Shown here: positions 2,019-56,700 of the stretch, piece by piece
How positions within the stretch are numbered: the stretch's first letter is position 1
Layout of the letters: every line of letters starts with the position of its first letter
NCBI GenBank assembly: GCA_004431415.1
Contig: QPMI01000122.1
Location: 62,001-126,000, forward strand
DNA from: Cyanophora paradoxa CCMP329
Taxonomy: Eukaryota; Plantae; Glaucophyta
Length of the DNA stretch: 64,000 bases
Reading direction: 5' to 3'
Made by a program: the position numbers and the translations under genes
The notes under the pieces: model-generated
Told to the model about the DNA's origin: nothing
Databases searched by the model: none
The model's input: the letters and a program-made list of their open reading frames with translations, nothing else

Positions 2019-3354
2019 ATGGGGCAGAAGCAGGTGCGTGCGTCTTACTCGAAGTTTTCTCCTCCGGAGCTAATCTTACTCGCAGTCAACGGCCGCGCAG
2101 CCGGAGGTGAAAGTCGGCGGCGTGGAGGTGAGCGAGGAGGCAACAGCAAATGCCGGCGAGACACTCGCCGCTACGGGCGTCAAGGCCGACGCAGGCAAGG
2201 TCGCCGCTGACAAGGCCACCGCCGACAAGGCCACCGCCGACAACGCCACCGCCGACAAGGACGCCGCTGACAAGGACGCCGCCGACAAGGCAGCGAAAAA
2301 GCGCGTCGTGGATATCGAGACGATCGTGACGGATCAGGACGGGAAGTCGGGCTTAGAACCATTTCTGAGACATTTGTCAACATTCTTCCTGGCGCTGCAC
2401 AAGGAACACCAGCCGGGTGACACGGCGAAGATTGCCCTCGCCATGACGGGTCTTGGAGCGCTATATCGGCTGATCAAGTTGGCGCTGGACTATATCGCAA
2501 CCGGCAACAAGCTCCACAGCAGCATCGAGGCCGCTGTGGATCTTCATGGAGATGGCGCTGTAAGGGAGCATTACATGAAGGAGCTCGATCCAGTTGGGAA
2601 GTGCGTTGTTTATGATCCAATCTTTTTGTTGCTTGCCATGTCTGATCCTTTTCCGTAATCAGGGAGCTCGCTGCCATAACAAAGGATTTGCAAGCATTAT
2701 GTGCCAAGCTGAAGCAGTCATGCCAAGTGCAGAAGCTGGAGGCGATGGTGCGTTGCGATCTCGATGCGATGGAGAAGGAGATGACAAACATCCGCGAGCG
2801 ACTTGAAAAAGCGGCCAAGGACATCAGCACCCTTCGCACAAAGGTCGAGGCTCACAAACTCAGTGCCCAGCTTCGGCAGGCTGGTGTCGGAGCTAGTGCA
2901 GCTCTCGGCTTTGGAGGGGGCATCGGTTCAAGCGTTGCAATAGGTATCCTCGTCCCGGTTCCAGTTGGCCCTGCCGTGGCTGTTGCTTCCGGGTTGGTTG
3001 GAGTGTCTGTGGGCATCTACGCCTCAATCCTCGCCCATAACCTTGGCAAGGTACAATCATATATGAAATTCCGTTGGTTATTTCACTCATTCTCTTCAGC
3101 AGATTATTAATAACCTCAACAGCGTCCTGGAAGAGCTGAAAGGCCAGCAAGCTAGCCAGGTATGCCCGCCCCTTGCCACATATGCATGCTGCTTTTCACA
3201 GAGGGGAAACTCATCGCTTTTCTTGCAGGAGGAGTTGAAAGGTGCTCTGTTGAAGCTGGCGGACAAGGTTGGCGACATGAAGACGACTGGAGAGGCCTTG
3301 TTTGCGGCATTTGCGGCAGGGCAGAATGTGAGTACTCCAGCGGCTGCTGCTTGA
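2019..3354 (+). CDS. Putative N-myristoylated coiled-coil protein with a Gly/Ala/Val-rich hydrophobic hairpin (ApoL/alpha-pore-forming-toxin-like architecture)
   Basis: Splicing of 4 GT-AG introns gives MGQKQ|STAAQ..., then heptad coiled coil, then AGVGASAALGFGGGIGSSVAIGILVPVPVGPAVAVASGLVGVSVGIYASIL, then coiled coil, TGA at 3352. Confidence 0.65.
2203..2292 (+). repeat. 15-bp coding tandem repeat (ADKAT/ADKDA x ~6)
   Basis: gccgacaaggccacc-type units. Confidence 0.85.
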
Positions 3355-3859
3355 TCTGTTGAAGCTTTGTCATCATCATCCAGCTTTCATGTATCGTCGG
3401 CTTCACTCTGTAGATGTACATAACTATTGCCGTAGTGCTGACATGATGCATGAAGCGTGTTTTAGCTGTGCACGATATCTGTGTAGTACAAGATTGTTAC
3501 CTTGAATGCTAGTTCGAATTTTCTTCGATGCTGAGGTATTGCATCACGGCTTTCTGCCGTCAGGAGCCGGTACTGCTAGCTTCTGCAGCGCCTGCGCAGA
3601 GTGCTCTCATTACACCCCCACTACTTTTCATGTACCCCGTTCCGGGTCCTTCCCCCGGGCAACGCACTTGTACCCGGGCACTTGCTCTTGCTCTCAGAAT
3701 CATTGAATACTAGCTCTGCTCGCCCTAACTCGTCTGCATATAGATGCTATAGATGCAAAAATGATGAAAACGATCGCGATCGCAAGTTTCAAGATTGCGA
3801 CCCCAGAATTCGAATCCGATCATCGGATCGCGATGATCTCTAGCTATAGCTAACTATAG

Positions 3860-13110: not shown

Positions 13111-15041
13111 CGCTGGACGCGGGTGTACCCAACGAGGCTTCCTCAAGCCGCAGCGGCTTGGAGCCACCGCTCACCCGACTCGCCTGACAGGCAGCTGAGG
13201 CGCTCACCGTTCTGATCATGGTCATGAACTCCAGACCCGCTCACTTCGTTTCCCTAGCCAGCAATCTTAGCCGTCTTGCTAGCTTGAATAGTTCTAGAGT
13301 AAGCTCGGTCCGCGCTGTCTTGTCCGCGGTGTCCGCTTTCGGCGATCGATCTTGGTAAGCTTTTTCAGAGTGCCAGATATAGAGGTATAGAAGTGGTACA
13401 CGTGTAAGCGCAGGTCTTCTTGATGAAGGCGCTTGGGGTTTTTATCATCCTCTCCTTCTCCTCGGAAGCTGAACCGCGGCACGTGGAGACAAACGACGGA
13501 GCAAAGACAAATATCACGACCAAGAGAACAAGGATCAAGCAATACCGCCGAGAAGTTTGTGCGGACCGTCACATATGCATTCGCATGCATTTTTGCAAGC
13601 CTGAAACTGGTGCAGGTGGCTGGGTTATCTTTGCTGGCCGATCTGTGGCATTCCTGAACATAGACATCCTTCAAGCTGGGGCTGAAATTAAAGCCAGGGC
13701 GACCCTCATGATCAGGTGCACAGACCCCCCCCCCCCCTCTTTCCCGTTGCATTATGAACCAAGTATAAAGCAGGTCAAGACTGGTTTCGCGGTCACATTC
13801 CGTGCAGCATCGCAAGGTGCGTTGGCGTCTTCCCGTCGTTTTCCCCCTCATCGGGGTCCGCATGCTCAGATGATTGATTGATTGATCAGCAGGGCCAGCC
13901 ATGGCAGACGTCAATGATTGAAAAGGCAAACGAATGTTTTGAACGTCATCTCATTTATTTTGCTCATCAAGTGCACAATCGCAGGTCTTCCGGGGACACA
14001 TTCTTCTGACACGTTCAGGGAGCATTTATCTGCTCGGTATTAAATCGAAGGAAGTTTGCTAACTCTGAACTCTGTTCTCCATCTTGGTTTGGAAGAGATG
14101 ATGCGCCCCTTGCAATTGTGATGCAACGCAGTACAAAGAAAACCGGGCATAATTACATTCTGTAACTTTCATCATCGAAAATTGATATCATGCATTGATA
14201 AATGTACAATTTCGCAAGACATATTTCCAATTCCCATGCAATGCACCCCCCTTTCTCCACTCCATGGCCATACAGCAATATCGTCGACGTCTCGATCGCG
14301 ACGGTCGACATCATGGCATCGCTGAATTGTTTCGTATCTTCATTTACAGTGTTGTAATTTATATGCCTTCGTTTTAATCGAATTCAATTGCAAATCCAGG
14401 TCTCGCACTGCGGCATGCGCAAGTCTAGCTATAGTCCGCTGGGGCATTGAAATTGTTTGTGTCAAATTCAAATGCTATGCCATGATGATATCGATATCGA
14501 TTGGATTCCCCGGATATGGATCAGGGTTTATCTCACTAAGCCAACGTTCGGAGCAGATCTAGAGTTAACCGTTACTAAGTTAAGTCAGGCTGGTCATGGC
14601 ATGGTGAGACGTCGACATGTGATCATGACGGATCACAAGTCATGATCATGGCATGCACCGCATCGATATCATGGCACTGCGGCATGCACAAGTCGCCATT
14701 GACCGTCGACGTCGGACCCCTAGGTATACGTAAATCATTGAATCTCAGGCTCAGTGGTTCAAGTTTATATATTTGAGCTTGACGTCGACTCTCAGTGCAC
14801 GGTGATCCATGGCCAGGTCTAGATCATCCGGATCATAGGACCAGATGACATAGTCTAGATCTAGAACTAGAGCGGCTGCCAGTCTGCTTATACTTGTGAT
14901 TGCACTGTGGCACTGCTGCATTGATAGAAAAGACACATAATGCTTATGAAAGACCATATATATGCATTTTCAGAGATGATGTGATACAACTATTATAAAT
15001 CAAAACGAACTGCTCACAAATCTTCATTCTTTGTTCCTGAC

Positions 15042-19028: not shown

Positions 19029-22000
19029 ATGGAGGGCGAGAGCCTCGCGGCCAGCGCTCAGCCCGCGGATCGCGAGCTCGCGTCGGAAGGAGACTCAGAA
19101 CCTGAAATCGAAATAGAGACCGATCCACGCGACGCGCCCGCAATCGCAGCGTTGGTGTTCAACGGCGACCTGGAGCTTAGGACAGCGGACGAGCCACCGC
19201 GTGACGAAGCGAATCAGCAGATGCACGATTGCGCTGAACGGGAGACGCCAGCTGAAGCGCCTCAAGCGCTCGATGCTGCCGGCCAACCCACGCCAGCAGG
19301 AGCGCTGGATGCTGCCGACCAGCCCATGCGCGAGGGAGCGCTTGATGCCGCCGACCAGCATATGCCAGCTGAAGCGCTCGATGCTGCCTACCAGCTTATG
19401 TCTGCCGAAGCGCTGGATGCCTCGGACCAGCATATCCCAGCAGAGGCGCTCGATGCGGCCTACCAGCTTATGTCGGCCGAAGCACTAGATGCTGCCGATC
19501 AGCATATCCCAGCAGAGGCGCTCGATGCGGCCTACCAGCTCATGTCGGCCGAAGCACTGGATGCCGCCAACGAGCAGATGCCAGCCGCAGCGCCAGGGGA
19601 GCCTGCAGGCCCGCACGATTCAGGCCCGCCGCAAGCGTGCGTATACGTCGAGATCGACGAGCCCGCGTCCGGCGGCGCGGCCGAGGTGTCGGCCGCCAGC
19701 GAGCAGGGCGCAACCGCAGCTGCGCACGATCCACCTGCAGCCGGGGGTCCGGACGAGGGCCCCAGCGATGGGCGGGAAGCGCACTCAAAGGAGGAGGTCG
19801 GCACGAGCGGCGGCGTGGCCGACGCGGGAGCCGGCGCGGCGGAGGGGCCCCCGTCCCCGTCCCCGGCGCCGGGGAGCGGGGCGGGCGGGGCGGGCGGGGC
19901 GGGCGGGGCGGGCGGGGAGGCGGCGCGGGTGGCGCACGTCGTCGACCTGGAGTCCATCGCGCCCCTCCTCTGGAGCTTCGTCCCGGCGCCCCCGCCCCCC
20001 GCCGCGTCCTCCCCGGCCGCCGCGCCCCGCGCCTCGGGCCCCCGCTGGTCGTCCCCCTCGTCGTCGCAGCGAAGCCCGCGCCCGGCCGCCCGAACCTGCG
20101 CGCCGCCTGCAGGGCCCCGCCGAGCAAGCCGGCCCCCGTCCCCGCCGCCGAGCGCACCCCCGCGTTCTGGCGCGCCCCGCCGCCGCCCCGGCCGCCCCGG
20201 ACGCCGCTCACGGGCTCAGCGCAGGCTGGCGGAGATGGGCAAGCTCGCCCGCATCGCCCTCCGCAAGCAGGGCGCCCCAGGCTCGCCCCCGCCCCGCCCG
20301 CTCCTGCCTCTCCCCTCTTACGCCGGCGGCCCCGCAGCGCCGGTCTGCGCGCTGTGCCGAGGGACCTCCGAGGTCGCCCTGACCCTCGAGGGCCGCCGCC
20401 GCCGCTTCCTCTGCCGCCCCTGCCGCCTCGCCCGGCCCCCAAGCGGCCCCGGCCCGCCCCGGCGGAGCTGCCGGCGGCGGCGGGCGGGCGGGGTGGGAGC
20501 TGCGCGTGCTGCGGCGGGCGGCGGGGGAGGAGGCGGTGGCGGAGGCGGCGCGGGCCTTCGCCCTCGCCGCCGCCCTCGACCCCGACGAGGCCCGCCCGCC
20601 CCTTCCCCGCCCCCGCCCCGCCCTCTGACGGCCGCGCCCCGCAGGCCGACGCGGTGGCAGAGGCTGCCGCCGCCGACTACGCCCTCGCCGCCGCCCGCCC
20701 CGTCCCCGCGACCCCGGCCCCGGCCCGTCCCCGGCCCCGTCTCCGACACGCACGCCGGAGCCGGCGCCCCTCCCGCCACCCATCCCGACCCCCGCCGGAC
20801 CGGCGGGGTCCGTCCCAGCCCCCCTCGCGGGACCGTCCTTTCACACGCCGCCAGCCCCCGGACCCGCGGCCCCTCGGCCATCCTCTTCAGCACTTCCCTC
20901 TCCCTCGGAGCCTGGGGCCGCCGCCGCACTGTTCACGCCCGTACCCCCGGCCCCCGCGCTTGTCCCCGGGTCGGCCGGCCCCGCCGCGGCACCACCTTCT
21001 GAGGCCCCGTCTCTCTTCACGCCGGCACCCCCGCCCCCCTTCGTTCGGCCCGCACCCCCTAGCCCGCCGCCAGGCGACCACGCCGCCCCCACCGAGCTGA
21101 TGGAGATCGAATTCGCCCCCGCCGCCCCCGGCGGTCCCACGCCGCCCTCCTCCGTATCTCCCATGGACCCTGCTGCTGCCCCGCCCGCCGTCGCGCAGCC
21201 GTCGGCCTCGGCTCCCCCAGCGCCCTGGGCCTCCTCGCCCGCCGCAGCAGTGGATTCCAGCGTCCCGGCCCCGGGCGTCCCCTCCTCCTCCTCCTCTTTC
21301 GAACCGGCGCCCTCCTCCTGCATCTCCGAGCCCCCGCCATCGCTCGCGCCGCATCCCCCCGCAGCCGCCGCCGAGCCAGCTCCCGGGCCGGCGCTCCATC
21401 CTCTCCCCGCGGCGACCGCCGGGCCGTCCCCCATGGAGCTCGACGCGCCGCCCGCCCCGCCGCCGCCCCGCCGCTGCCGCCGCCGCAGGCGGTCGCGCCG
21501 TACCTCTCCGCTGCGGCGCGGCGGGCCCTCGCCCTACCGGCGCCCCGCGAGGCGGCCTGCGCCGGCCCGCAGGCCCCGCCCCTCGCGCGCGTCCCCCGGG
21601 GCCCCCGCCCCTCCCGCTCCTCCTCCACGTGCCCCTCTCCCCGCCGAGCGCGCCGCCCTCCTCCACGCCGCCCCGCGCTGCCCCGCGCGGCCCCGCCCCT
21701 CCTGCACCGCCCCCGTCCGCCGCGCCGGCCGCCTCCTGCCCCCGCCCGACGCCGTCGACTTCGCTGCGGTGGCGGCGCGGATGCCCGGCCGCAGCGCCGC
21801 CGCCCTGCGCCGCGCCTACGCCGATATTCTCGGCGGGCCCGCCGTCTCGGGCCCCGAGCCGGCGCTCCTGCTGGGGCGCCCCGCGGCGCGCTGGGAGGCC
21901 GCCGACGCGGCGCGCCACGCGCGGCCGCCCTTCGCGCACGCCGCGCCGCCGCCGCGGCCGACCCTCAACCTCGCCGCCCTCCTCCGCGCTCGCGAGCTCG

Positions 22001-25921: not shown

Positions 25922-28900
25922 CTACTGTTGCGCGTAGGTGTACTGCGCCTGGGTGGCATCGGCCGGCTGCGCCTCGGCAGCGGCGGCCGCCTCCTGCGGC
26001 TGCTGCGCGTACTCGGCGGCGGGCTGCGCCTGAGCGTACTCGGCGGCGGGCTGCGCCTGCGCATACTCGGCGGCCGGCTGCGCCTGCGCGTACTCGGCGG
26101 CCGGCTGCGCCTGGGCGTACTCGGCGGCCGGCTGCTGGGCGTAGGCGGCCTGCTGCGCGTACTGCTGCTCGGCCGCCGCCTGCTGCTGCTGCTGCGCGGC
26201 GGCGTACTCCTGCGCCTGCTGCGCCGCCGCGTCCTGCTGCGGCTGCTGCTCGTGCCCGTAGGCCGCGTAGGCCGCGTACTGGGGCATCCCCTGCGGGGCC
26301 GCCACGACCACCATCGGCACGCCCGACGCCGCCTGCGTCGTGTCTGCCCCCCGCGCGTCAGCGGCGGCCGCGGCCGGCACACAGGCGGGGGCGCACAGTG
26401 GGCGAAGCCGGCGGTCATCTGCTGCTGCACGTGGCCGCCCGCGTGCTGCGCGTAGTGCTGCTGCTGCTGCTGCTGCCACTGCGCTTCGGGCTGCGCGGGC
26501 CGGCTGGGTCAGCAGGGGCCGGCGCGGCGGGGGTAGGGGGGCGGAGCGCACGTGCTGCATGTGGCCCTGGGCGACGTGACCGGAGTAGCGCTGCAGGCCC
26601 GAGGCCTGGGGCAGGGGCGCCGGGCTCGAGACGCCCATGTTCTGCTTCGGCTTGCGGCCGGGCTTGCGGCGCAGGTTGGCGAGGCGCTCGCTCTCCTTGA
26701 GGTTGGCGTCAGAGTGCTCCTTCGCGTTTCTTGCCAGGTACGCCACCACGTGCCCGTCGATTTGGCCCCAGCGGTCTGCGCGCGAGGGCTCGGCCGGGGC
26801 GCGGCACACGGTCCGGGCCGGAGGGCAGACGCACGGGTGGCGACGCGGGCCTGGATCTCAGACTTGATGGAGAGGATCCAGCCGAAGAACATCATGACAG
26901 CCTCCTCGTACATCGAGAGCGCCCGCGCGTGGTTCCGGTGGAAACGCTTCATGTGCATGTCGAACTGCGCCGGGGAGGGTCGGTTCGGGTGGCGCCGGCG
27001 GGGCGGCGGCGGCCCGGGGCGGGGGCGCACGAGCTCGTAGGCGGAGCGGCGGCGGCGGCGGGAGCCGGAGCCGTCGCCGTCGTCCATGTCCTCCTCCTCC
27101 TCCATGACCTCGTGCTCGACCTGGTGGTGGTGGTGCATCATCTCCATCTGGCCCCCTCCCACCGGCTCGATCGGCTGCTGCATCCCGTCCGGGCCCATCT
27201 GCACGGCCCCCGTGCCGTCGTCCCCGCCCATCTCGCCCATCTGCATCGAGGACGCCGTCGAGCGGCGCGGCTGAGGCGGCTGCGAGATGCGCCGCGGCGG
27301 CGGGTGCGGGTCCTGCTTCGTCGACGTGTTCATCGTGCTCTGCACCGGCGAGTCAGCGCCGCTGGCGGGGGCCGGGCCGGGGCGGGGCGGGGGCAGGCCT
27401 TGCGGCGCTCAAGATCGTCGCGCTTCTGGTTGACGACATCCTTGGCCTTCTGGAAGTTGCGAAAGAGGGTCTTGTACTGCTCCATGTACTTCCAGTACAT
27501 CTCCTGCAGGTTTTCGTTGTCCAGCGACTGGATGTACTGCAGGAACGACTCGTACGCCGGCCGGTCGTCCCCCATCCCGTCCTCCCCGTCCTTCATCCGC
27601 CGCGACCGCTTCCGCATCGCCTTTCCGTCCGACATGTCCGACGAGCGGCCGGGGAGCGTGAGGGGGCCCGGCGCCATCAGCGTCGGGAGGCTCTGGATGG
27701 TCGCCGTCCAGGACGAGGCCGGGGCGGCGTAGGTCATGGTGGCGGCCGGCACGGCGACGGTCATGTGCGCCTGCTGGTGGTGGTGGTGGTAGGCCGGCTG
27801 GACGTGGCCGTGGGCATGCGCGTGCGCCGCCGGGTCGTGCGCGACGTGCCCGTGCTGCACCATCACGCCGCCCGAGGCCGCCACCTCCTCCATCGGGTGC
27901 GCGTGCGCGTGCGCGTGCGCGTGGGCCTGCGCCTGAGCCTGCGCGTGGTGCATCGCAGCCGGGTCCACTGGCATCGACGCCTCCGGCATCTGGTACTGCG
28001 GCGGGGCGTGCATCCCCATCTCCTCCTCCTTCTTCTTGGCCGAGCGCCGCTTGCGCGAGCCCTTGCCGAAGTCATCGTCGTTCTGGTCGTCCTCCTCCTC
28101 GCTGAGCTCGCCCGCCTCCTGCTTCTTGCGCGACGCACGGCGCTGGCGCTTGCCGCTCACGTCGCCTCCATCCGCGCCCGGAGTCGGAGGCGGAGCGCCG
28201 TGGCTGATCGGCAGCGGAGGAGCGTGCTCGGCGTGCTGAGGCATCGCCTGCTGCACCTCCTGCGGCACCTCCGGCTGCTGCTTCTGGCTCTCGTCATCGG
28301 TCAGGTCGGACTCCTCCAAGACACCGTTGTCCACGCCGATGATACGGCCGGGGAGCGGCTTCAGGGTGCCAGTGGCCGCCACGTACGTGCTCCTGCGACG
28401 GAGTCAGGAGCTCCGGCAAAAGGAAGACGATAACTAAAAAAGCTTTCTGATAAGAATGGTACGCATGGAACACGCACCGGCAGAGGAAGGAGAGGTTGTC
28501 CTCGGGAAGGATCGGGCTGGGCTCGTCCGGCTTCAGGTGGTAGATGGCCACCTTCTCGTGCGCACTGGACAGGAGCAAATTCAAATTCAAAAGCGTTACG
28601 GAACTACAAAGCACGCTACCTCTCCGCGGGCTGGCCCTTCTCACGCGACTCCGAGAAGAAGATTTCGCGGGGCTCAGCCGGGTGCGGAAGGCCGGGCGCA
28701 TCGGGCGTAGGAGCGGGCTGTAACACAATTAGAGCTCGCAGAGAGCATTGGCGGAAGCGCGCCGACCTGGTACGCATGCCGAGGGAAGAAGTACCACCTG
28801 ATGTCAACAAGCACGGCGGCGGGGTTCTCATCTGTCGGAAAGGTATCGGAATTCAATTAGGAACCCGGAAAAGCGCATTGGAGGCGCCCCCGGCCGGGAA

Positions 28901-43283: not shown

Positions 43284-43511
43284 GGTGTTTGTCCTGCGAA
43301 TCGCGCGCGTCAGACAAGGTTTGGTAACTGGCTCCGTTGAGCGCGTTCGCGGCGGGAAAGTCGAGAGGCGCCGAGGTTTCTAATGCGTTCGCTGGCTTCG
43401 AGCAGATAATAGGCCTTAAAGGAGCTTCGAGACGAATGCGGCCGCCGCGCACGCCCGGTGCCGGATCACCGCCGACGATGACAGCGGAGACCGGACGGAT
43501 GCCTAACGTAA

Positions 43512-46500
43512 AGCGCGTCTATCCGTATCACGTAGACGTAGGCCAGCACGCACACTCGCGCGAAGAAAGAACGCTTGCCGGGGGTGGACTACTGTGGGGG
43601 TAGAGTGCGTTCCTGGGGTCGAGGCCACAGCGGCGCAGGCGGGATGGAGGCCACCGCGTTTTTGAGCTCTGCGATAGCGGTTGGTACCGGACGTTCACGG
43701 ACGCTGGCGGGCGCGGATGCCGGGACGATTTGTATCTCGACGGACGCGACGCCGTTGAGGTCGTCCGGAGGCTCGAAACATCAGCGCACTTTCTTTTCTG
43801 GGTCAGCGGCGGCGTCCCTTTCCTGGTTGCCGAGGCGAGCTGGCGCGAGCCGACGAATCCCCGCTGCGCCTGTGTCCCTGGATGCGGTCGCCTCTGGAAC
43901 CCGTCCTAGAGCAGCTCGGGAGACGGGAGAGGAACCACGGAATCGCGCGCGCAGGGCGCCGCGCGTGCCTGCTGCGGGCCCGTCCACGTCGTCCGCCCAG
44001 CCAGCGCAGCGCGGGCTGACGGACAGGCAAGTCACCACGTTGGTGCGCCACTCCTCGCGCGACCCGCGGCAAAGCCCGCGCGCAGCGATGCGGGCCTGAC
44101 GAGATTCCGGGCCAGATTCGATCGGCGGCGACTGCAGAGGCGGCGCTGGGGGCGTTCGAGCTGCTCCCGCGGGCCGGCAGGAAGAACAACCTCATCCACC
44201 ACAACGCGCTCCTCAAGGCCCTGGTGCCCCGCACCGCCGCCGCCCCGCCCCCACGTGCCGCCCCTCGGCTAAGCTCCCGCGCGCAGTGCGGGGCGCGCGC
44301 GGTGGACCGTGCGCGGGACGTGCTGGAGCGCATGGAGGCGGCGGCCGGCGGGGGCGCCGGCGCGGCGGACGCGTGCGCGCCCGACGTCCTCTCGTACAAC
44401 ACACTCGTCGCCGGTGCGGCCGCCTCCTCTGCCCGCCCGCCCGCCCCGCCCGCCCGCCGGCGGCCGGGTCCGACGGGGGCGGGGCGGGGCAGGCTACGCG
44501 AGCGAGGGGCGGGTGGAGGAGGCGGAGGCGCTGGTGGCGCGCATGCGGGCGGCCGGCGCGGCGCCCGACGCGGTGACGTATAGCACGCTCGTGCACGCCT
44601 GCGCCCGCGCCCTCCCGCCCCGCATGGACCTCGCCGAGAAGGCCCGCCCCCCCGCCGTCCCTTTCGCCCCGCGCCCGCCCCGGGCTGACGGCGGGGGCAG
44701 ACGGTGGCGGAGATGCGGGCGGCCGGCGTGCAGCCGAACCTCGTCACCTACAACGTGCGCCCCGCCTTCCCGCCCCGTCCCTGCGCACCGCCAACTGGCG
44801 GGCGGGCGGGCGGCAGACGCTGGTGCACGGGTACGCGGCGGCGGGAATGGCGGCGGAGGCCCTCGCCACCCTCCGCGCCCTCGTGCGGCCCGGCCCCGCC
44901 CCCGCCCTCGCCTCCGACCGCCGACGGGCCTGGCCGGGCAGGAGGGCGAGCTGGGGACGGACGTGACGACGTGGAACGCCTGCCTGCACGCCTGCTTCCG
45001 CGCCGCCCGCCCCGAGGCCGTGCGCCCCAACCCGCCCCGCACCGCCCTGGCCGGGGCCGCCCGCCCACGCCCCGGGGCAGGCGCAAGCGCTCTTCGACCG
45101 GATGGAGGGGCGCCCGGCCGCGGGGCCCGCCGCGGGGCCCGGCCCGCCCCGCCCCGCCCCAACGCCGTCACCTACAGTGCGCCTCTCGCCTCGCTCGCGG
45201 CCCCGCCGTGCCGCGCCGGGCGGGGCCGACGGGGCGGCAGGCACGATGATCGGGGGCCTGTGCGACGCCGGCGCGCCGGGGCCCGCCCGCGCCCTCCTCC
45301 GCCGCCTCGTGCGCCTGCCCGGCCCGCCCGCCCCGCTCGCCGCCAACGCGCCGGGCGCGCAGGCGGCGGAGGGGGCGCCGCGGCCGCTCCGCGCGGCGGC
45401 GACGACGGCGCTCCTCGACGGCCTCCGCCGCGCCGTGCGCCCCGCCCCCGCCCCGCCCCGCCCCGTCCCCCGGCCTCCCCTCCTCACCCGCGGCGCAGGG
45501 GCGGGCGGAGGAGCTGGCGGAGGCGTTCGAGGAGGCGGAGCGGGCTGGCCTGGCGGACGCGCGGCTCTACGCGGCGGCGGTGGCCGGCCTGGCGCGGGGC
45601 GGGCGGCCGGCGGCGGCGGAGGCGGCGCTGCGGGAGATGCGGCGGCGCGGGCACGCCGCCGGCGAGGCGCTCTTCGGGGCCGTCCTCGACGCCTTCGTCG
45701 CGGCGGGGGACGGCCCCGGGGCCGACCGGCTCCTCGGGGCCCAGCGGGAGGCGGGGGTGCCGTGCGGGGACGCCGTGCGGCTGACGGCGGCGCTGCGGTG
45801 CGGCGTCTCGCACGGGCGCGCGATGGAGGTGTTCCGGGACCTGGGCGAGGGGGCGGCCTGGCTCGCGGCCCTCCGCCCCGACGCCCGCCTCTACACCGCG
45901 CTCCTCGAGTCCTGCGCCCGCGACCGCAACGCCCGCGACGCCCGCGCCGTCTTCGCCGCCGCGCCCCGCCCCGACGCCGTCCTCTGCGGGCCCGTGCCCC
46001 CTCCTCCCCCTCTCTTTCCCCCTCCCTGCGCCCCTGACGCCCCGGCGCAGGGTGATGATGCGGGCGTACCTGCGCTCGGGGCTCCCGCGGGAGGCCCTCG
46101 CCCTCTTCGACACCCTCCGCCGCGAGCGCCGCCTCGCCCCCACCGCCGTCCGCCCCGCCCCGCCCCGCCCCCGTCCCGGACTGACGGCCCTCTCTGTCTC
46201 TCTCTCTCTTTCGGCGCAGTCGTGCTACGCGGCGGCGGTGGACGCGGCGACGCGGGCCGGGGACGGGGCGCGGGCGGCGGGCCTGGTGCGGGAGATGCGG
46301 CGGGCGGGCCACCGGCCCTCGGCGCGCCTCTACAACGTGGCGATCCAGAGCCAGGGGGCCCTGGGCCGCGCCGACGCCTGCTTCGAGCTCTACGAGGAGA
46401 TGCGCGCCGCCGGCGTCGCCCCCACCGCCCTCACCCTCTCCTCCCTCATGGCCGCCTGCGTCCGCTCCGGCGAGCCCCGCCGCGCCCTCGGCCTCCTCCC

Positions 46501-48099
46501 CGCCGTGGAGGCCCTCCCGCCGGCCGAGCGGCTCGACACGCGCGCCTACAACGGCCTCCTGCGCGCCCTCGCCGCCTCGCGCTGCGGCGCCGACGAGGCG
46601 CTCGCCCTCCTGCGGCACCTCTCGAGCCTCGGGGCGCGCCCCGACGAGGAGACCTGCGCGCTGCTCGTCGAGGCCTGCGTGCAGGCCGGCCGCGCCGGCG
46701 AGGCCCTCGCGGCGCTGCGCGAGATGACGGCCGCCGGCGTCCGCCCGACGCCCGTGACGTACAGCAGCCTCGTGCGGGCCCTCGCGGGGAGCATGCAGCA
46801 GGAGGCCGCCTTCGGCCTCCTCGCCGACATGCGCGGCGCGGGGCTCGAGGGCGACGCCCGCGCCGCCCGCCGGGCCTACGGCGCGCTCGTCGAGTCGTTC
46901 ATCGCGAGCGGCGAGCCGCTGCGGGCGCTGCTGGGCCTGCGGGAGATGGAGGAGCGCGGCCTGCCGCCGCCCCGCGCCGCCTTCGAGCGCCTCATCGACG
47001 CCTTCTCCGGCTCCGAGCGCGTCGACGAGGCCTTCGCCGTCTTCCGGTACCCCCCGCCCGCCCCCCCCCCCTCCCTCTCTTCGGGCCTGACGGGGGGCGG
47101 GGCGCAGGATGATGGAGGGGGCGCTGGGGGGCCCGACCCCGCGGGCGTACGGGGCGCTGATCGAGGCGCTGGCACGGGCGCGGGAGCCGCTGCGGGCGAC
47201 GCTCGGGCTGCGGGAGGCGGAGTCGCGGGGCCTGCGCCCCGGGCTCCCCACCTACGACCGGGTGGTCCAGCGCCTCGGCGAGGCGCGCGAGGTCGACGCC
47301 GCCTTCGCCGTCCTCGGCCGCATGCAGGCCTCGTACCCCCGCGCCCCCGCCCGCCCGGGCGCCTACGCCGCCCTCGTCGAGGCCTGCGCCGGGCGCGGCC
47401 TGCTGTTGAAGGCCCTCCTCGGCGTCGCCGAGCTCCAGCGCGCCCTCGACGCCGGGGTCGGCGCCGCCGCCCTCCCGCCCGCCGCCGCCGCCGCCGCCGG
47501 CGAGGGGGCCGCCCCGGACCGGCACCTGCGGCGGGCGTACAGCGCGGCGCTGGCGGCGCTGACGGAGCGGGACGCGGGGGACGGGTACGAGCTCTACCGC
47601 GCGGTGCGGCGGCGCTGGGGCCTCGAGCCCGACGACGCCGCCCTCGCCATCCTCCTCTCCGCCCACCTCGACGGCTCCCCGCTCCTCCGGCCCATCCCCC
47701 CCCCCCCCCCCCCCGAGCGGCCCCCCTCCCCGGCGCCCCTCCTCCTCCCCGCCTCCGCCTCCCCCCCCCCCGGGGACGAGAGCGGCCTCCTCCTCCCCAC
47801 CGCCCTCTTCGCCCCCCGCGGTCCCACCCCCGCCAAGCCTTAGTGCTGCCCTTTCAAAGGTCCGGTTGGATGTCGTCCCTGCAGCATCGGCGCACCCGCT
47901 CATCAGGTTTTCAAGCCCTCGTGTGTCTTTTACAACTTTCAAGCTTTTTGCATATTGTGTGTCCGATGAATCATGTACCTTTGTCTCGGGAGATCTAGAG
48001 GAATAGATTAGACCTTCAGGTAGTGTGTGTTGCCATGTCGTGTGCATGTCACCCTTGCAGTTATGATGTTTTTTTTTTTTTGAATATTTCAACTTGCTA
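43512..48099 (+). repeat. Segmental direct repeat, copy 1 (PPR gene plus flanks)
   Basis: Aligns to 53705-57825, from agcgcgtctatccgtatcac to caacttgcta. Confidence 0.93.
43644..47843 (+). CDS. Organelle (probably plastid)-targeted pentatricopeptide repeat (PPR) protein, intact copy
   Basis: Presequence MEATAFLSS..; 35-aa motifs PDVLSYNTLV, PDAVTYSTLV, PNLVTYN, DVTTWNACL, PSARLYNVAI, PTPVTYSSLV. Confidence 0.9.
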
Positions 48100-48215
48100 G
48101 GGCTGAATTATGAACGGCACTGAAAACTTCCGATGACCTGATTACGAGCACATCGGAGCAATCATAATGAAAACATTATGGGTCATTACGCCACAACGCG
48201 CCTTCACCTTGAGAG

Positions 48216-50019
48216 TTAGGCAAAAAGTTGGGAGAGAAACCCTAAAATACCGTCGAAAGAAATACATGCTGTGTCCTCAGCATCAGATGTATCTTCTGCA
48301 CCTCCAATCACGCTGGCGCCTTCAGAACAAGCACTCTCCACTTCGCCACCCCTTGCCACAGATCGCGGGGCCGCCACGCCCGCTGCTGCAGCCTCGCCGC
48401 CCGTGGACCCGCCATTGCCCCCCGCCTCTGCCCCATTGCCGCTTGCCGTTGATCGCGGGGCCGCTACGCCCGCCGCTGCAGCCTCGCCGCCCGTGGACCC
48501 GCCATCGCCCCCCGCCTCCGCTCCGCTGCCGCTTGCCGTTGATCGCGGGGCCGCCACGCCCGCCGCTGCAGCCTCGCCGCCCGCGGACCCGCCATCGCCC
48601 CCGGCCTCTGCTCCGCTGCCGCTTGCCGTTGATCGCGGGGCCGCTACGCCCGCCGCTGCAGCCTCGCCGCCCGCGGACCCGCCATCGCCCCCCGCCTCCG
48701 CTCCGCTGCCGCTTTCCGTTGATCGCGGGGCCGCTACGCCCGCCGCTGCAGCCTCGCCGCCCGCGGACCCGCCATCGCCCCCCGCCTCCGCTCCGCTGCC
48801 GCTTTTCGTTGATCGTGGGGCCTCCACGCCCGCCGCTGCAGCCTCGCCGCCCGTGGACCTGCCATCGCCCCCCGCCTCGGCTCCGCTGCCGCTTGCCGTT
48901 GATCGCGGGGCCGCCACGCCCGCCGCTGCAGCCTCGCCGCCCGCGGACCCGCCATCGCCCCCGGCCTCCGCTCCGCTGCCGCTTGCCGTTGATCGCGGGG
49001 CCGCTACGCCCGCCGCTGCAGCCTCGCCGCCCGCGGACCCGCCATCGCCCCCCGCCTCCGCTCCGCTGCCGCTTTCCGCCGATCGGGGTGCCGGGGGGCT
49101 CGTAGGATCCTCCGATTCCGAAATGTTTTTTTCAGTTGCCTTGGCAATTGCCTCCTCGTACCCGCCTGTCGATGGGCCCACGTCCAACCTAACGAGCGGT
49201 TTTTGCTCGAGATCGAACTGGCGGTGGCGTTAAAAGGGGAGGCTTGAATAGGAAGCGTAGCAGAGGCGCAAGGCACACGTGGTTGCGCTGTTTTGCAATC
49301 CCCAGACCGTGAGTAAAGCTCTGCAGCCCGCAGCGCCACGTGCAGCAACCGTCCACAAGCACTCGCGCGCCAGGATCTGCCCTCACTCCTGTCCGACCCA
49401 CCTCGTGCAAGTAGCAGCGTCTCACCTGGGCGCACATTGAAAAAATAGAAAGATAGCGAAAATATACGGCCAGAACCTCGCAAAGAGCTGCCTTCTGAAT
49501 CCAGATGGCTTCTCCGTCACATGGGCCCACGTCGCAGTTCTCGATAACAGCACGCGCGCCCGTGCCGCCCTCGATAATGACTGCGCTGGTTCGGGGCGCG
49601 GATGCTTGCAGCCGGCACCGAGTGATCCGAAGCTCGCCTTCCTCAGACTCGCTCCAACAAAGAGCGCCTTTTACGAGAGCATCCTTTGGTATGCGGACAT
49701 CACACCGATCGAAAATGCATTTGCCGGCGCGTACGTTCAGTTCCGCGCCGCCGACGATCGTCAAGTTGACAAAAGTGATTGTGCTGCCTGTTCCAGCACG
49801 CAACTCAATGGTCGGTCTGGAAAAGTCGTGCGAGCGTATAGATGCATTACGGCCTACAATCGTAAGCTGAGCTTCGGCCGGAATAACCGCCGAGACGTTT
49901 GCATCAAGCTCGCCGACCACTACGACGGTGCCTGCCCATCCGATCGCTTCGCCTGCAGCATCCAAGCTCTCGTACGCGTTGTCAAATTGGTGCCGAGACA
50001 CCAAGACCAGCGCTCTCAT
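48216..50019 (-). CDS. Right-handed beta-helix (pectin-lyase-like) protein with a Gly/Ala/Ser-rich 30-aa repeat tail
   Basis: ITFVNLTI, CIFDRCDV, LRITRCRL, AVIENCDV, VRRCYL, VLVDGC beta-helix rungs; two GT-AG introns (~49426-49476, ~49218-49279) splice in frame into the repeat ORF 48216..49187. Confidence 0.65.
48361..49085. repeat. 90-bp tandem repeat, 8 near-identical copies
   Basis: gatcg unit starts at 48361, 48451, 48541, 48631, 48721, 48811, 48901, 48991 (partial at 49081). Confidence 0.97.
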
Positions 50020-50057
50020 GAATTCAATTGCATCGGTACCCCCTGACGACACACCTC

Positions 50058-50129
50058 AGTGACACCTGAGTGACACCTAAGTGACACCTGACACGGTGTC
50101 ACGGAGGCTCGTGTCAGCCGATCGTGTCA
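50058..50129. promoter_or_regulatory. TGACAC motif array in the divergent promoter (4 forward + 3 reverse copies)
   Basis: AGTGACACCT(G/A) x3 at 50058-50090; TGACAC at 50089; GTGTCA at 50096, 50111, 50124. Confidence 0.6.
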
Positions 50130-50277
50130 GTCAGCTGCTGCTCAGCGGCAATCGCATCGACAGATCGGGGGTCGACTGGTTGTTGTTTGCGGCAAGCGCT
50201 GCGGCCTACAGGTGATCGTAGATGCACGCAGGAATGATCGCTTTGAAGATTATCGCAAAGTATGACACAAACCGTAG

Positions 50278-52427
50278 ATGGCGGGCGCTAAAAACTCATA
50301 CGTTGTGAAAAGGCAGCTCGACTTTCTGGAAGACGATGCCATCTATGCGCAGTTACAGCAGTGGATCGGATTTCCGTGCGCATGTTGTGTTTGCTATTTG
50401 CTTCGTAAGCACTGTGTTGGTTATTTTTCTGACAAAGCGCTAGATTCACGTTTTCAAAATTGTACGAGGCATCGAGCCTCAACAACACTGTTAGCGGACC
50501 AGCTTTCCATTCGGCTTGCGATAATAAAGGTCCTACGATTACTATAGCTCGTATGGGGACTGGTCACATCATTGGCGGATTCACAATGCAATGCTGGGCA
50601 AAAGTGCAATTTCATTTCATCAATTTCCTGTACTGAATTCGAATTTAATTTTGGAACTGCATTTCGTAGGGTGCAACTGTGAGTGGAAGTTACTCTTGTG
50701 GCGAAGATCGACTTGCGTTTATTTTTGCTCTTTGTGGTGCAAATGGCCTCATGAAACCGATTCTGGGGCGGATCAAAGAGGCGAACTACAAAACAGCCAT
50801 TTTGCGTGCAGATAATTGTGGACCAACCTTTGGTCTTCCGCAAGCAAAGGATTGCTACAGCTATCCTGATTTAAGCTCTGTTGATCTTTCTTTCTTCAAC
50901 AATCAGTGGAAATTCACTGCACGTTCATTTTGTTATTCCATTCCTGCAAACACGTTTCCTCCTGATGGTACTGTGGTGGAGAGACTGGAAGTTTACAGTG
51001 TTGAACTTTCCCTGGATGGTGGTAAGTTGTGGTGGCTTTAAGATGGTGGTACTAGTGTGGTACAGCTGACAGCTTGCAGCTTCTCTTGATTTTAGCCAAC
51101 TTGAAGTTTCGACTGGCCCAAAAGTAAAGCTCTGGCAGAAGCTATCATTCAATGAGAAGTCTGCAATTTGCCTCCACTTCTGTGTGGCCTTTACTCAGTC
51201 TGCATCAGGTCTCGAGACGAGCTGCTTGCAAAACTCCGTTCTCGCAAACCCAAGGGTGCTGAAAGGCTGCATGTACCCGCATATAACATTCTTCTTTTCG
51301 CTGGTGTTGGTGCTGGTTTGCCCCTTCTTCCTTCCCTTCTCCATTCCCGGCAACCAACCACCGTGAACAGGAAAATCATCATTTGTCAACACGCTGGACA
51401 CTGCACTGCGTGGGCGCCTGTCTTCTATTGCAATGGTTGGAAAGGGGTCTCGATCCATCACTTCAATTCTTGCAAAGCGCCGCCTGCACTCGACTGCTGC
51501 GATCAACCTTTGGGATACAATGGGTGTGTTTGATTTTCTGCTCATTTTTTTCATTTATCCACCAGGATGCAACAGGATTCACGGTAGAAGTCGAAAAGAA
51601 GATGGAGTTTACTCAAATGTTTCACTATCTTGTAAGTGGCAATCTTGTGGATAACTTCGACCTGTCCAAGTTTGTATTGCTCTGGGTTTCAGTTAAATCT
51701 GTTTTTCTTCAGTAAAAACTCATGTTTTCTTCTGCACGCAGGGAGATTTTGGTTGACACCCCTGGCATTGTATGATGTCTTCTGAATTTGAAACTTTTGC
51801 ATGTCTCTGAGTCACTTGTGTGCCTCACAGAATCTGGCTCCAACATTGGCCGACCGGGTGCATATTGTTGCACTTCTGGTCCCAGAGGAGAGTGCTTCAG
51901 ATGATGTGTACATGGGGCGACTTTGCGAGTTTTTAAAAATTACAAATAAGCCTAACATAGGTGTGTTGGTTGCTTGTTTTAGTTGCTTGCACGATTGCGA
52001 GTCGAACTCTACTTTTTTGCATAGCCAAGGTGGTGGTTCTCCTGAGCAAGGTGGACAGGGCAGACCCAGCTTTGCTTGAGGATGATCTTTCGAAGGTCGA
52101 CTCCAGTGCTCGTGTTGCTGAACGGCGAAAGCTCATCGCACAAAAGGTGTAAATGTCGCTGTTCTATTTCCAAAGAAGCTTACCAAGAAGCCTTTAGGTC
52201 GGTTTACAACCATTTATGGTTATCCCTATTAAGAACTACTATGAGGAAGGCTCTCCTGATGTTGCTGTGGATGTGCTCGCTTTGGATGCGCTCTGGTGCA
52301 CTTCTTCCCTGCCCTTGGACCCAAATGCATGTGTTTGACGGTGTGAAACAGGCGTATGCTGGATTGTGCAGACGATTTCTTGGTAGAGCAGGCACGGATC
52401 ATGGGTATCAAAATTGATGAAGACTGA
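50278..52427 (+). CDS. IFI44/IFI44L-like protein (N-terminal TLDc + C-terminal P-loop GTPase)
   Basis: TLDc: KLYEAS..FHSACDNKGPTITI..IIGGFT..AFIF..GPTFG..LEVY. GTPase: NILLFAGVGAG|KSSFVNT, LWDTMG, PTLADRVH, VVVLLSKVD, VIPIKNY, LDALWRMLDCADDFL; about 10 introns. Confidence 0.9.
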
Positions 52428-52519
52428 TGTTGAATGCCATAATGCAAAAGTACATTACATGTACATGACTGCACGCTTGGAGAAAAGTAAAAGTAAACTT
52501 GGTTAATGCAAAATTTGTA

Positions 52520-53552
52520 TCATGATGCGTATCGAATGAGCTGATCTGCAAGGTCGCCAATGAGTTTTTTATTCTGTTCAGCAGAGAGCAAGGTCGCAGG
52601 AGCTATGTCATCAAACACGGCATCAAATATATGGCCACATCGTCCACGTCCTTGAACAGCTGCAAGAGCCTCCGAAACGTATCCCTCGCACTGAAATCTG
52701 GATATTACGCAGGATAATCTGAAATCGAGATCAGTAAAAGATACCTTGCCCTCGACTGGACTGCTCTGCCCTTCAATTGCAACCTGGTGCATGAAGACCA
52801 CAATCCGCGCTCGGGCATCTGAGAGAGTCATTAAGCTCATTTTATGCCGAGTGTTCGAACGATAAGTACCCTGAGAGACTTGTTGAAGGCGCAAGGTGAC
52901 TTCCTCTGGCTGAATTCGCGACTCAGAACGGTAGAAGAGGATAATGGCATCTGCTGATGCATCCGACGTCTGTCCTTCCCCATCGAGCAAGAGCTCCACT
53001 TGACGATCCAGCAGGATACGCCGAACCTCTGCCATAAGAACACGAGTGACGTCGGTTCTTTTGAATTCAAGCGTCCCACGGACAGCAGTGCGGACTTGAA
53101 CTGCGACAGAGTAAGAGAAGAGACAACAGCCGAGCCAAAACAGTGCCAAACCTCTCTTCAATCTCGGTGGTGGCACGGGCGGAGCTGAGAAGTGCCGATT
53201 CTGTGCGCCCATCCGAGGCGGTACCAATTCCGGTGCAGAGCACAACGCCCGCACGGAAGAGCTGTAAGGGGCAATCGGCATCCTGCTGTCTTGGCGCAGC
53301 TTATCGATCTCGTCCATGAGCGCTAGAACGAGCTCGCTTAGTAGCGCATCCTGTTCACGTAGCGCTTCAAGCGCTCCATGAAAGCTGAACTCTGATCGAG
53401 TCTGCGAGAGCCGTCGCTCTCGCAAAATTGGGGCCAATACACAACATTTGAACCTGGCGGAGCGTTCTGATAGCCCAGGCGATTGCCTCTGGAGTGCGCG
53501 CTTGTCTGCGATGATCTGCCTCGACACCTGGTCGACTGCTGCTTATGCCCAT
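52520..53552 (-). CDS. Putative N-myristoylated protein: short coiled coil, Pro-rich linker, TIR/flavodoxin-like alpha/beta domain
   Basis: Spliced start MGISSSRPG..; PPVPPPR; ADAIILFYRSESRIQPEEV..ARIVVFMH..IFDAVFD..LLSAEQNKKLI. Confidence 0.6.
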
Positions 53553-53704
53553 CTCTGTCTGCCCACGCATCGGATGTCTTATGTGATCTTATATCTGCAT
53601 GCGTACGTTTGACGGACTGCTAGCTGCGTCAAAAAGGCACCACGTCAAAGGCACGACGACGAGCAGCTCGTTCATCAGCTAGCTCAGCAGCTAGTCTAGG
53701 GTAC

Positions 53705-56700
53705 AGCGCGTCTATCCGTATCACACAGACGGGGTGGGCACGCACCATATGTACACGCGCGAAGAAAGAACGCTGGTCAGGGGGGACTACTGGGGGGTAG
53801 AGTGCGTTCCTGGGGTCGAGGCCACAGCCGGGCAGGCGGGATGGAGGCCACCGCGTTTTTGAGCTCTGCCATTGGTGCTGGACGTTTGTGGACGCTGGCG
53901 AGTGATGCCGACGCAATGAGAACAACCTCATCCACCACAACGCGCTCCTCAAGGCCGTGGTGCCCCGCGCCGCCGCCGCCCCGCCCTCACGTGCGGCCCC
54001 TCGGCTTAGCTCTTGCGCGCAGTGCGGGGCGCGCGCGGTGGACCGGGCGCGGGCCGTGCTGGAGCGCATGGAGGCGGCGGCCTGTGGGGGCGCCAGCGCG
54101 GCGGACGCGTGCGCGCCCGACGTCCTCTCGTACAACACACTCGTCGCCGGTGCGGCCGCCTCCTCCGCCCGCCCGCCCCGCCCGCCAGCGGCCGGGGCCC
54201 GACGGGGAACGGGGCGGGGCGGGGCAGGCTACGCGAGCGAGGGGCGCGTGGAGGAGGCGGAGGCGCTGGTGGCGCGCATGCGGGCGGCCGGCGCGGCGCC
54301 CGACGCGGTGACCTACAGCACGCTCGTGCACGCCTGCGCCCGCGCCCTCCCGCCCCGCATGGACCTCGCCGAGAAGGCCCGCCCGCCCGCCATCCCCGCC
54401 GCCCCGCGCCCGCCCCGGGCTGACGGCGGGGGCAGACGGTGGCCGAGATGCGGGCGGCCGGCGTGCAGCCGAACCTCGTCACCTACAACGTGCGCCCCGC
54501 CTCCCCACCCCTTTCCTGCGCATCGCCGACGGGCGAGCCGGCGGGTGGACGGGCGGCAGACGCTGGTGCACGGGTACGCGGCAGCGGGGATGGCGGCAGA
54601 GGCCCTCGCCACCCTCCGCGCCCTCGTGCGCCCCGGCCCCGCCCCCGCCCCGCCCCCGCCCCGCGCCGCCGACGGGCTTGCAGGAGGGCGAGCTGGGGAC
54701 GGACGTGACGACGTGGAACGCCTGCCTGCACGCCTGCTTCCGCGCCGCCCGCCCCGAGGCCGTGCGCCCCGCCCCGCCCCGCCCCGCCCCGCTCTGGCCG
54801 CCCCGCTCACGCCCCGGGGCAGGCGCAAGCGCTCTTCGACCGGATGGAGGGCCGCCCGGCCGCGGGGCCCGCCGCGGGGCCCGGCCCGCCCCGCCCCCGC
54901 CCCAACGCCGTCACCTACAGTGCGCCTCTCGCCTCGCTCTCGTGGCCCCGCGCGCCGCGCCGGGCGGGGCGGACGGGGCGGCAGGCACGATGATCGGGGC
55001 CTGTGCGACGCCGGCGCGCCGGGGCCCGCCCGCGCCCTCCTCCGCCGCCTCGTGCGCCTCCGCCCGCCACGCCCGCCCCGCTCGCCGCCAACGCGGCGGG
55101 GCGCAGGCGGCGGAGGGGGCGCCGCGGCCGCTCCGCGCGGCGGCGACGACGGCGCTCCTCGACGGCCTCCGCCGCGCCGTGCGCCCCGCCCCGCCCCGCC
55201 CCGCCCGGCCTCCCCTCCTCACCCGCGGCGCAGGGGCGGGCGGAGGAGCTGGCGGAGGCGTTCGAGGAGGCGGAGCGGGCCGGCCTCGCGGACGCGCGGC
55301 TGTACGCGGCGGCGGTGGCCGGCCTGGCGCGGGGCGGGCGGCCGGCGGCGGCGGAGGCGGCGCTGCGGGAGATGCGGCGGCGCGGGCACGCGGCCGGCGA
55401 GGCGCTCTTCGGGGCCGTCCTCGACGCCTTCGTGGCCGCGGGGGACGGCCCCGGGGCCGACCGCCTCCTCGGGGCGCAGCGGGAGGCGGGGGTGCCGTGC
55501 GGGGACGCCGTGCGGCTGACGGCGGCGCTGCGGTGCGGCGTCTCGCACGGGCGCGCGATGGAGGTGTTCCGGGACCTGGGCGAGGGGCGGCCTGGCTCGC
55601 GGCCCTCCGCCCCGACGCCCGCCTCTACACCGCGCTCCTCGAGTCCTGCGCCCGCGACCGCAACGCCCGCGACGCCCGCGCCGTCTTCGCCGCCGCGCCC
55701 CGCCCCGACGCCGTCCTCTGCGGGCCCGTGCCCCTCCTCCCCCTCTCTTTCCCCTCCCTGCGCCCCTGACGCCCCGGCGCAGGGTGATGATGCGGGCGTA
55801 CCTGCGCTCGGGGCTCCCGCGGGAGGCCCTCGCCCTCTTCGACACCCTCCGCCGCGAGCGCCGCCTCGCCCCCACCGCCGTCCGCCCCGCCCCGCCCCGC
55901 CCCCGTCCCGGACTGACGGCCCTCTCTGTCTCTCTCTCTCTTTCGGCGCAGTCGTGCTACGCGGCGGCGGTGGACGCGGCGACGCGAGCCGGGGACGGGG
56001 CGCGGGCGGCGGGCCTGGTGCGGGAGATGCGGCGGGCGGGCCACCGGCCCTCGGCGCGCCTCTACAACGTCGCCATCCAGAGCCAGGGGGCCCTGGGCCG
56101 CGCCGACGCCTGCTTCGAGCTCTACGAGGAGATGCGCGCCGCCGGCGTCGCCCCCACCGCCCTCACCCTCTCCTCCCTCATGGCCGCCTGCGTCCGCTCC
56201 GGCGAGCCCCGCCGCGCCCTCGGCCTCCTCCCCGCCGTGGAGGCCCTCCCGCCGGCCGAGCGGCTCGACACGCGCGCCTACAACGGCCTCCTGCGCGCCC
56301 TCGCCGCCTCGCGCTGCGGCGCCGACGAGGCGCTCGCCCTCCTGCGGCACCTCTCGAGCCTCGGGGCGCGCCCCGACGAGGAGACCTGCGCGCTGCTCGT
56401 CGAGGCCTGCGTGCAGGCCGGCCGCGCCGGCGAGGCCCTCGCGGCGCTCCGCGAGATGACGGCCGCCGGCGTCCGCCCGACGCCCGTGACGTACAGCAGC
56501 CTCGTGCGGGCCCTCGCGGGGAGCATGCAGCAGGAGGCCGCCTTCGGCCTCCTCGCCGACATGCGCGGCGCGGGGCTCGAGGGCGACGCCCGCGCCGCGC
56601 GGCGGGCCTACGGCGCGCTCGTCGAGTCGTTCATCGCGAGCGGGGAGCCGCTGCGGGCGCTGCTGGGCCTGCGGGAGATGGAGGAGCGCGGCCTGCCGCC

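Follow-up and report, generated by a model that had tools for sequence, protein, structure and literature searches.

The question raised by this locus is whether three tightly packed genes, here called A, B, and C, form an innate-immunity island or are ordinary neighbors. They lie in a 64,000-nucleotide stretch of DNA from the glaucophyte alga Cyanophora paradoxa (contig QPMI01000122.1; the whole stretch is referred to as the window), between two copies of a PPR gene. A first-pass annotation had described them as a beta-helix sensor, an IFI44-like GTPase, and a TIR-like partner enclosed by long direct repeats. The described layout holds: the three genes have spliceable, stop-free models with GT-AG introns of 50–72 nt and, as whole genes only, fill the unique 5.6-kb spacer between the repeats (48100–53700). 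The explanation favored here, with modest confidence, is that the trio consists of resident neighbors in dense packing beside a local duplication, and that gene B, alone or together with other proteins, serves as a GTPase induced by stress or infection.

48216–50019, minus strand: gene A, right-handed beta-helix protein of 563 amino acids; exons 50019–49477, 49425–49279, and 49217–48216
50020–50277, no strand: divergent spacer between genes A and B, 258 bp from ATG to ATG
50278–52427, plus strand: gene B, IFI44-like protein with a TLDc domain and a P-loop GTPase, 498 amino acids, 12 exons, frame intact
52520–53570, minus strand: gene C, orphan protein of 262 amino acids, 5 introns, frame intact

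The divergent spacing of A and B and the 92-bp stop-to-stop gap between the convergent genes B and C agree exactly with the first-pass annotation.

Judged from its sequence, gene B is an IFI44-like gene, with an N-terminal TLDc domain and a GTPase. Its exons (50278–50375, 50444–50603, 50670–51021, 51080–51158, 51209–51315, 51371–51523, 51576–51669, 51742–51769, 51831–51960, 52025–52146, 52198–52295, and 52352–52427) are separated by 11 GT-AG introns of 50–72 nt, with no internal stop. All searches, for this gene and the others, were run on single exons or on stop-free genomic frames, those of genes A and C keeping one or two in-frame introns. Searching exon by exon costs sensitivity, full-length relatives of short exons escape the word-based protein search, and blank results are therefore weak evidence throughout. 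Exon 2 matches Pfam TLD (E 4.4e-5, 23.9 bits against a whole-domain cut-off of 24.5). For exon 3, a search of 1.8 billion representatives gave as its best real relative a protein with TLD repeats (P0001; E 2.9e-5), and the same exon matches the NCBIfam TLD model at E 0.03; a second candidate, P0002, was rejected as a spurious cohesin match. A homologue search with exon 6 and a search of viral contigs with gene B were blank.

The GTPase was approached through a degenerate DNA pattern built from gene B's own G1 and G3 motifs. This pattern recovered four metagenomic GTPases (L003–L006) that score as MMR_HSR1/septin-like P-loops and that we take to be IFI44-type GTPases, presuming their likeness to IFI44L. 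Exons 5, 6, 9, 10, and 11 of gene B are collinear on profile A1, made from these four proteins, at positions 9–39, 41–96, 140–154, 183–218, and 221–251. The match of exon 6 is partly circular, whereas exon 11 played no part in finding the homologues and is independent; it matches the profile at E 2e-5 among 1224 window segments and by hhalign at 92.9% (E 3.8e-7). By hhalign, none of exons 7, 9, and 12 matched significantly, and profile A1 found nothing in viral and prokaryotic genomes. G1 reads A-G-V-G-A-G-K-S over the junction of exons 5 and 6, a Walker A motif in which Ala replaces the first Gly. G3 is D-T-M-G followed by Phe in the preferred splice model and by Asp with an alternative acceptor, with Gln in neither, and a G4-like SKVD lies in exon 10 (P 7e-4). 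The IFI44-like call of the first-pass annotation stands on the TLD matches of exons 2 and 3, the collinear GTPase exons, and the retained motifs.

Like IFI44/IFI44L (TLDC5) of animals, in which the N-terminal TLDc domain has been assigned (PMC5614904), gene B joins an N-terminal TLDc domain to a C-terminal P-loop GTPase in a protein of similar length. It shares with them G1, G3 (DTMG plus a hydrophobic residue), the G4-like SKVD, and the family's C-terminal block P-x-x-N-Y...D-[IV]-L. It differs in having A-x4-GKS rather than strict G-x4-GKS (given among the IFI44/IFI44L motifs as GXXXXGKS; 10.1101/2020.02.24.963900) and in coming from a host that is not an animal and for which no interferon system is known. 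The comparison with IFI44 runs through the metagenomic relatives L003–L006 and not through named IFI44 sequences. On these features, gene B appears to be a non-animal member of the known IFI44 family with an intact frame. Literature searches brought up no study of IFI44 in algae; among protists, proteins annotated as IFI44-like are not rare. How IFI44 and IFI44L work in animals is still little understood (10.1101/2020.02.24.963900). In oyster and cnidarians, IFI44 genes are induced by virus or by double-stranded RNA/poly(I:C) (PMC7064767, PMC13319465), which establishes such a role for animals beyond the vertebrates; by analogy, gene B may reasonably be proposed to act in immunity.

The gene B product would be a cytosolic stress- or infection-induced protein. 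Its TLDc domain could dock on V-ATPase-bearing endomembranes, as is reported for other TLDc proteins (PMC11066047, PMC9263379), and its GTPase, which lacks the Ras-type catalytic Gln, may work by dimerizing in the manner of GBP/AIG/septin-type GTPases. On two metagenomic contigs, IFI44-type GTPase domains are fused not to TLDc but to LIM domains (L003:73–1545) or to an SH3 domain (L004:55–1224), which suggests that this GTPase is modular. Another of the four relatives, L005, resembles a fish exon. In a protist assembly (GCA_028826165.1; L001:10001–17686), a RING-kinase with several TLDc repeats adjoins another TLDc gene.

The apparent enclosure of the trio depends on the repeats and on what lies beyond them:

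43508–48099, plus strand: direct repeat copy 1, full PPR gene with ATG at 43644, stop at 47843, and a transit-peptide-like first exon (blastn self-comparison)
53701–57825, plus strand: direct repeat copy 2, PPR duplicate, probably the inserted copy (blastn self-comparison)
53600–53698, no strand: promoter-type tract rich in CTAG/TAGCT, left half, lying upstream of gene C; the tract resumes at 57826–58000 beyond PPR copy 2
58380–61413, plus strand: ATG1/ULK-like kinase, a control gene outside the repeats (Pfam Pkinase E 3e-16, ATG1-like_MIT1 E 0.006)

By blastn self-comparison, the window holds one long direct repeat, with a core at 44183–48099 and 53919–57825 that is 95.3% identical and a 5ʹ piece at 83%; Pfam identifies the gene that it carries as PPR (PPR_2, E 5.7e-31). 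Long direct repeats thus do enclose the trio, as first reported. Their proposed role as island borders fares less well, as the junctions favor PPR copy 2 as the insert. CTAG/TAGCT words (mean 0.24 per 100-nt bin) reach their highest density in the window, 8 matches, directly left of copy 2, and the bin at 57900–57999 on its right is the third densest (5 matches); no such tract follows copy 1 on its right. Excising copy 2 in silico leaves gene C and the ATG1-like kinase divergent at ~680 bp. All four repeat borders carry CTA (43503–5, 48097–9, 53696–8, and 57823–5), a microhomology. From copy 2, ~465 nt of coding sequence are missing at the 5ʹ end, and its exonic G runs carry 1-nt deletions. 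To judge from the sequence at the junctions, copy 2 is probably the inserted piece, and the repeats are probably not cassette borders.

The apparent enclosure of the trio would arise from a copy of its GC-rich left-hand neighbor, the PPR gene, landing on its right in the promoter region between gene C and the ATG1-like kinase, within one continuous low-GC stretch. The genome of C. paradoxa, whose gene style the window fits, is described as densely packed, with overlapping untranslated regions and 34.7 Mb duplicated (PMC6704402). Tight spacing was rejected as a sign of co-regulation, since short spacers occur elsewhere in the window; a divergent chromodomain/PPR pair, for example, is separated by 360 bp, an arrangement comparable to gene C and the ATG1-like kinase once copy 2 is removed. 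Copy 2 (53841–57582), without the transit-peptide-like 5ʹ region, may, by starting at a downstream ATG, have yielded a protein that was shorter and retargeted. Its last PPR exon differs from that of copy 1 by 7 synonymous and 10 non-synonymous changes.

The first-pass annotation had further set the trio apart by lower GC and AT-richer introns than its neighbors. This is correct relative to the PPR gene, where GC at third codon positions (GC3) is 0.99 and intron GC is ~0.79; the corresponding values are 0.62–0.64 and 0.51 for gene A, 0.45 and 0.43 for gene B, and 0.51 and 0.49 for gene C. It fails relative to the ATG1-like kinase, 4.8 kb from the trio, with GC3 of ~0.56 and intron GC of ~0.49 (the last four exon borders being approximate). 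Across the 64 kb, 28% of 500-nt windows have <60% GC, and further low-GC stretches lie at 1–4 kb, 13–18 kb, and 58–64 kb. Since a housekeeping kinase outside the repeats is equally low in GC3 and in intron GC, there is little to support an island, and low GC was rejected as a mark of foreign origin. A transposon or endogenous virus was likewise rejected, because no mobility gene was seen and the introns are of the host type. The proximity of an ATG1/ULK-like autophagy kinase to the TLDc-GTPase gene B may be chance.

Gene A lies head to head with gene B and ends in a repetitive tail:

48361–49093, minus strand: 90-nt (30-amino-acid) tandem repeat in the gene A tail (Tandem Repeats Finder period 90, 8.1 copies, 94% matches)

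The beta-helix call for this gene is sound. Its first two exons match Pfam Beta_helix (PF13229) at E 3.4e-6 and 27.2 bits, above the cut-off of 25.9, and a single-sequence model is beta-solenoid-like (predicted local distance difference test score, pLDDT, 57), its top Foldseek matches being beta-helices, none with E < 0.001. Gene A shares the Pfam match and the beta-solenoid-like model with right-handed beta-helix proteins of the pectate lyase, tailspike, and FBXO11/CASH types. It differs from them in having no F-box, no signal peptide by inspection, and a long tail of ~8 copies of a 30-residue Ala/Gly/Ser/Glu-rich unit, described as disordered. Specific family models and PDB sequence, plasmid, and viral-contig searches gave no match. 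Gene A is a generic beta-helix protein in which no feature marks a sensor role, and the sensor proposed by the first-pass annotation is not borne out. Past the disordered repeat, the end of the protein (48216–48290) is a short hydrophobic or amphipathic segment, possibly a membrane anchor. The A/B spacer contains 7 TGACAC/GTGTCA boxes at 50060–50124, in direct and inverted orientation (17 occur in the whole window), in a cluster that includes an 11-nt unit in 3.5 tandem copies. These boxes could be binding sites for transcription factors in a bidirectional promoter. Gene A, whose product would be a beta-helix scaffold carrying a disordered tail, probably shares this promoter with gene B, and need not share its pathway.

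The third member of the trio is the one for which the earlier description changes most. Gene C has exons at 53570–53454, 53401–53255, 53200–53152, 53100–52870, 52818–52745, and 52690–52520, with the start codon at 53570 or 53552. It encodes a short coiled-coil-like segment in exon 2, a Pro-rich linker, and a C-terminal alpha/beta domain. No TIR, TIR_2, SEFIR, or defense TIR profile was matched in Pfam, PADLOC, PHROGs, NCBIfam, or PDB sequences, with filters that drop profile matches above E ~0.1, and the sole profile match is a PHROG of unknown function at E 0.013. Two homologue searches, and searches of viral, metagenome, genome, phage, and plasmid contigs, were blank. A single-sequence model with two in-frame introns retained has a pLDDT of 33.5 and is unusable, and Foldseek on this model is meaningless. 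Like TIR/SEFIR domains, gene C has a predicted beta/alpha alternation with an acidic pair starting the helix after the central strand. Unlike them, it matches neither a TIR profile nor a TIR structure, lacks the N-terminal motif of the F-x-S-Y type, and has no partner that is a receptor or an NLR. On visual inspection, its central strand-helix-strand looks like that of TIR, and a Glu-Glu pair lies near the position of the TIR catalytic Glu; this resemblance explains the earlier TIR label, and is a lead only. With no profile or PDB match behind it, TIR was rejected as an established label for gene C, which would be a fast-evolving alpha/beta domain protein placed tail to tail with gene B through ordinary dense packing.

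Another possible kinship of gene C is to an unannotated fish alpha/beta family, which it resembles and which we take to be PANTHER PTHR34488 (si:ch211-245h14.1). Literature searches found no mention of PTHR34488. A pattern for this family found one real member, in a polyprotein (L009) of the 27,004-nt viral contig IMGVR_UViG_2706795573_000001. The polyprotein is probably pp1a of Chinook salmon nidovirus, a bafinivirus with a genome of 27,004 nt (PMC7107822). Its alpha/beta domain (L009:2557–2940; contig 4157–4540), a full copy of the fish-type domain without a Pfam or PDB match, lies in ORF1a directly before a methyltransferase, with a macrodomain nearby. Some isolates of Chinook salmon nidovirus naturally lack 4148–4628 (PMC7290303), a deletion that nearly coincides with the domain and suggests a dispensable accessory module. 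No description of the domain as host-derived was seen in PMC7107822 or PMC7290303. A possible degenerate second copy lies near L009:3889–4239.

Exons of gene C were aligned with this domain separately, and their positions and scores were combined, in a pairwise comparison with one family member. No single exon is significant (shuffle fractions 0.08–0.92). The best alignments of exons 4, 5, and 6 follow one another in order along near-equal diagonals, a pattern matched by 2% of shuffles and, with the same summed score, by 0.7%; as the family was chosen by eye, this p-value (~0.01–0.02) is post hoc and the evidence weak. Across these exons, the strands, helices, and motifs of gene C come in the same order and with the same spacing as in the fish family; gene C differs in its very low identity, the loss of a conserved Cys and a GTD motif, and the added N-terminal coiled-coil-like segment. 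On this alignment, homology of gene C to the fish-type family is about evenly balanced or slightly favored.

Prokaryotic defense islands, with which the trio was compared, likewise bring possible conflict-related genes close together. The trio differs from them in its intron-rich, host-type genes and in the absence of PADLOC hits, mobility genes, and demonstrated recurrence; no defense-system or mobile-element signature was detected in its region. No paralogue of A, B, or C occurs elsewhere in the 64-kb window, and collections that hold almost no long eukaryotic contigs yielded no other locus at which even two of the three families occur together. The relatives of gene B sit on contigs of 1–1.5 kb. 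The A–B–C cluster is probably ordinary.

Three other explanations were weighed against resident neighbors plus a PPR duplication. An unlikely one is that B and C are a real defense pair, an IFI44-like GTPase with a divergent TIR- or flavodoxin-like partner, gene A being a bystander or a promoter-sharing partner. The collinear chain of C exons 4–6 on the nidovirus domain speaks for it, as does the setting of that domain beside a methyltransferase and a macrodomain in a naturally dispensable stretch; the strand and helix order predicted for gene C, at low confidence, could also fit a TIR-like sheet. The post hoc chain without a significant single exon, a fish family with no known function, linkage that did not recur in the collections searched, and a convergent orientation that gives B and C no shared promoter speak against it. 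The broader version, in which an interferon-free alga pairs an IFI44-family GTPase with a TIR-like member of a fish-expanded, nidovirus-captured family as an ancient eukaryotic antiviral module, is rather more doubtful. It is very unlikely that the trio forms a cassette of sensor A, TIR adaptor or NADase C, and GTPase B that arrived or moves in one piece, perhaps through a circle that integrated by way of PPR homology. Such an integration would produce the observed direct-repeat pattern, the unique segment holds only whole genes and ends exactly at the repeats, A and B share a spacer with repeated boxes, and gene C carries, by eye, a Glu where TIR domains have their catalytic one. However, gene C matches no TIR profile at any threshold used and lacks the N-terminal motif, gene A has neither a signal peptide nor a family assignment, the introns and GC are host-like and match those of the ATG1-like kinase, the junctions point to copy 2 as the insert, and no recombinase or transposon part is present.

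It is equally improbable that PPR copy 2 is an assembly artefact, arising from two haplotypes or misjoined long reads, with A–B–C lying between PPR and ATG1 or on the other haplotype. The central PPR exons of the two copies differ at 12 synonymous and 0 non-synonymous sites, as alleles might, and 1-nt deletions in G runs are typical of long-read error. The 465-nt deletion, the many intron indels, and the 83%-identical 5ʹ piece are much for alleles, and C. paradoxa is reported to be probably haploid (PMC6704402). The preferred explanation, resident neighbors with a duplicated PPR gene, has points against it as well. The direction of duplication is inferred from composition only. The purely synonymous differences in the central exons argue against a copy 2 that was non-functional from the start; both copies may have been under selection for some time, or else they are alleles. 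Gene B has the lowest GC3 among the genes measured, and gene C may belong to a virus-captured family, which would place two conflict-related genes side by side.

Further features lie elsewhere in the window. Low-GC spliced genes without a Pfam match lie at 2021–3400 and 13420–13900, and in the product of one of them a Gly-rich hydrophobic stretch comes after a coiled coil. Direct repeats of 44 nt (93%) at 61451–61494 and 63880–63922, with a partial copy near 63643, flank a low-GC spliced gene at ~62166–63635 and could be a mobile-element end. Coding tandem repeats occur in unrelated genes (36 nt at 19261–19593 and 27 nt at 25966–26234).

If the preferred explanation is true, the cluster itself is ordinary. 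What it contains is an intact TLDc-GTPase in an alga, that is, the IFI44 architecture outside animals, and gene B offers a simple system for asking whether IFI44-type genes are infection-induced without interferon. If gene C belongs to the fish nidovirus family, this unannotated family would gain an ancient origin and a candidate partner, and if genes B and C truly form a module, each of the two orphan families would acquire through the other a function open to testing.

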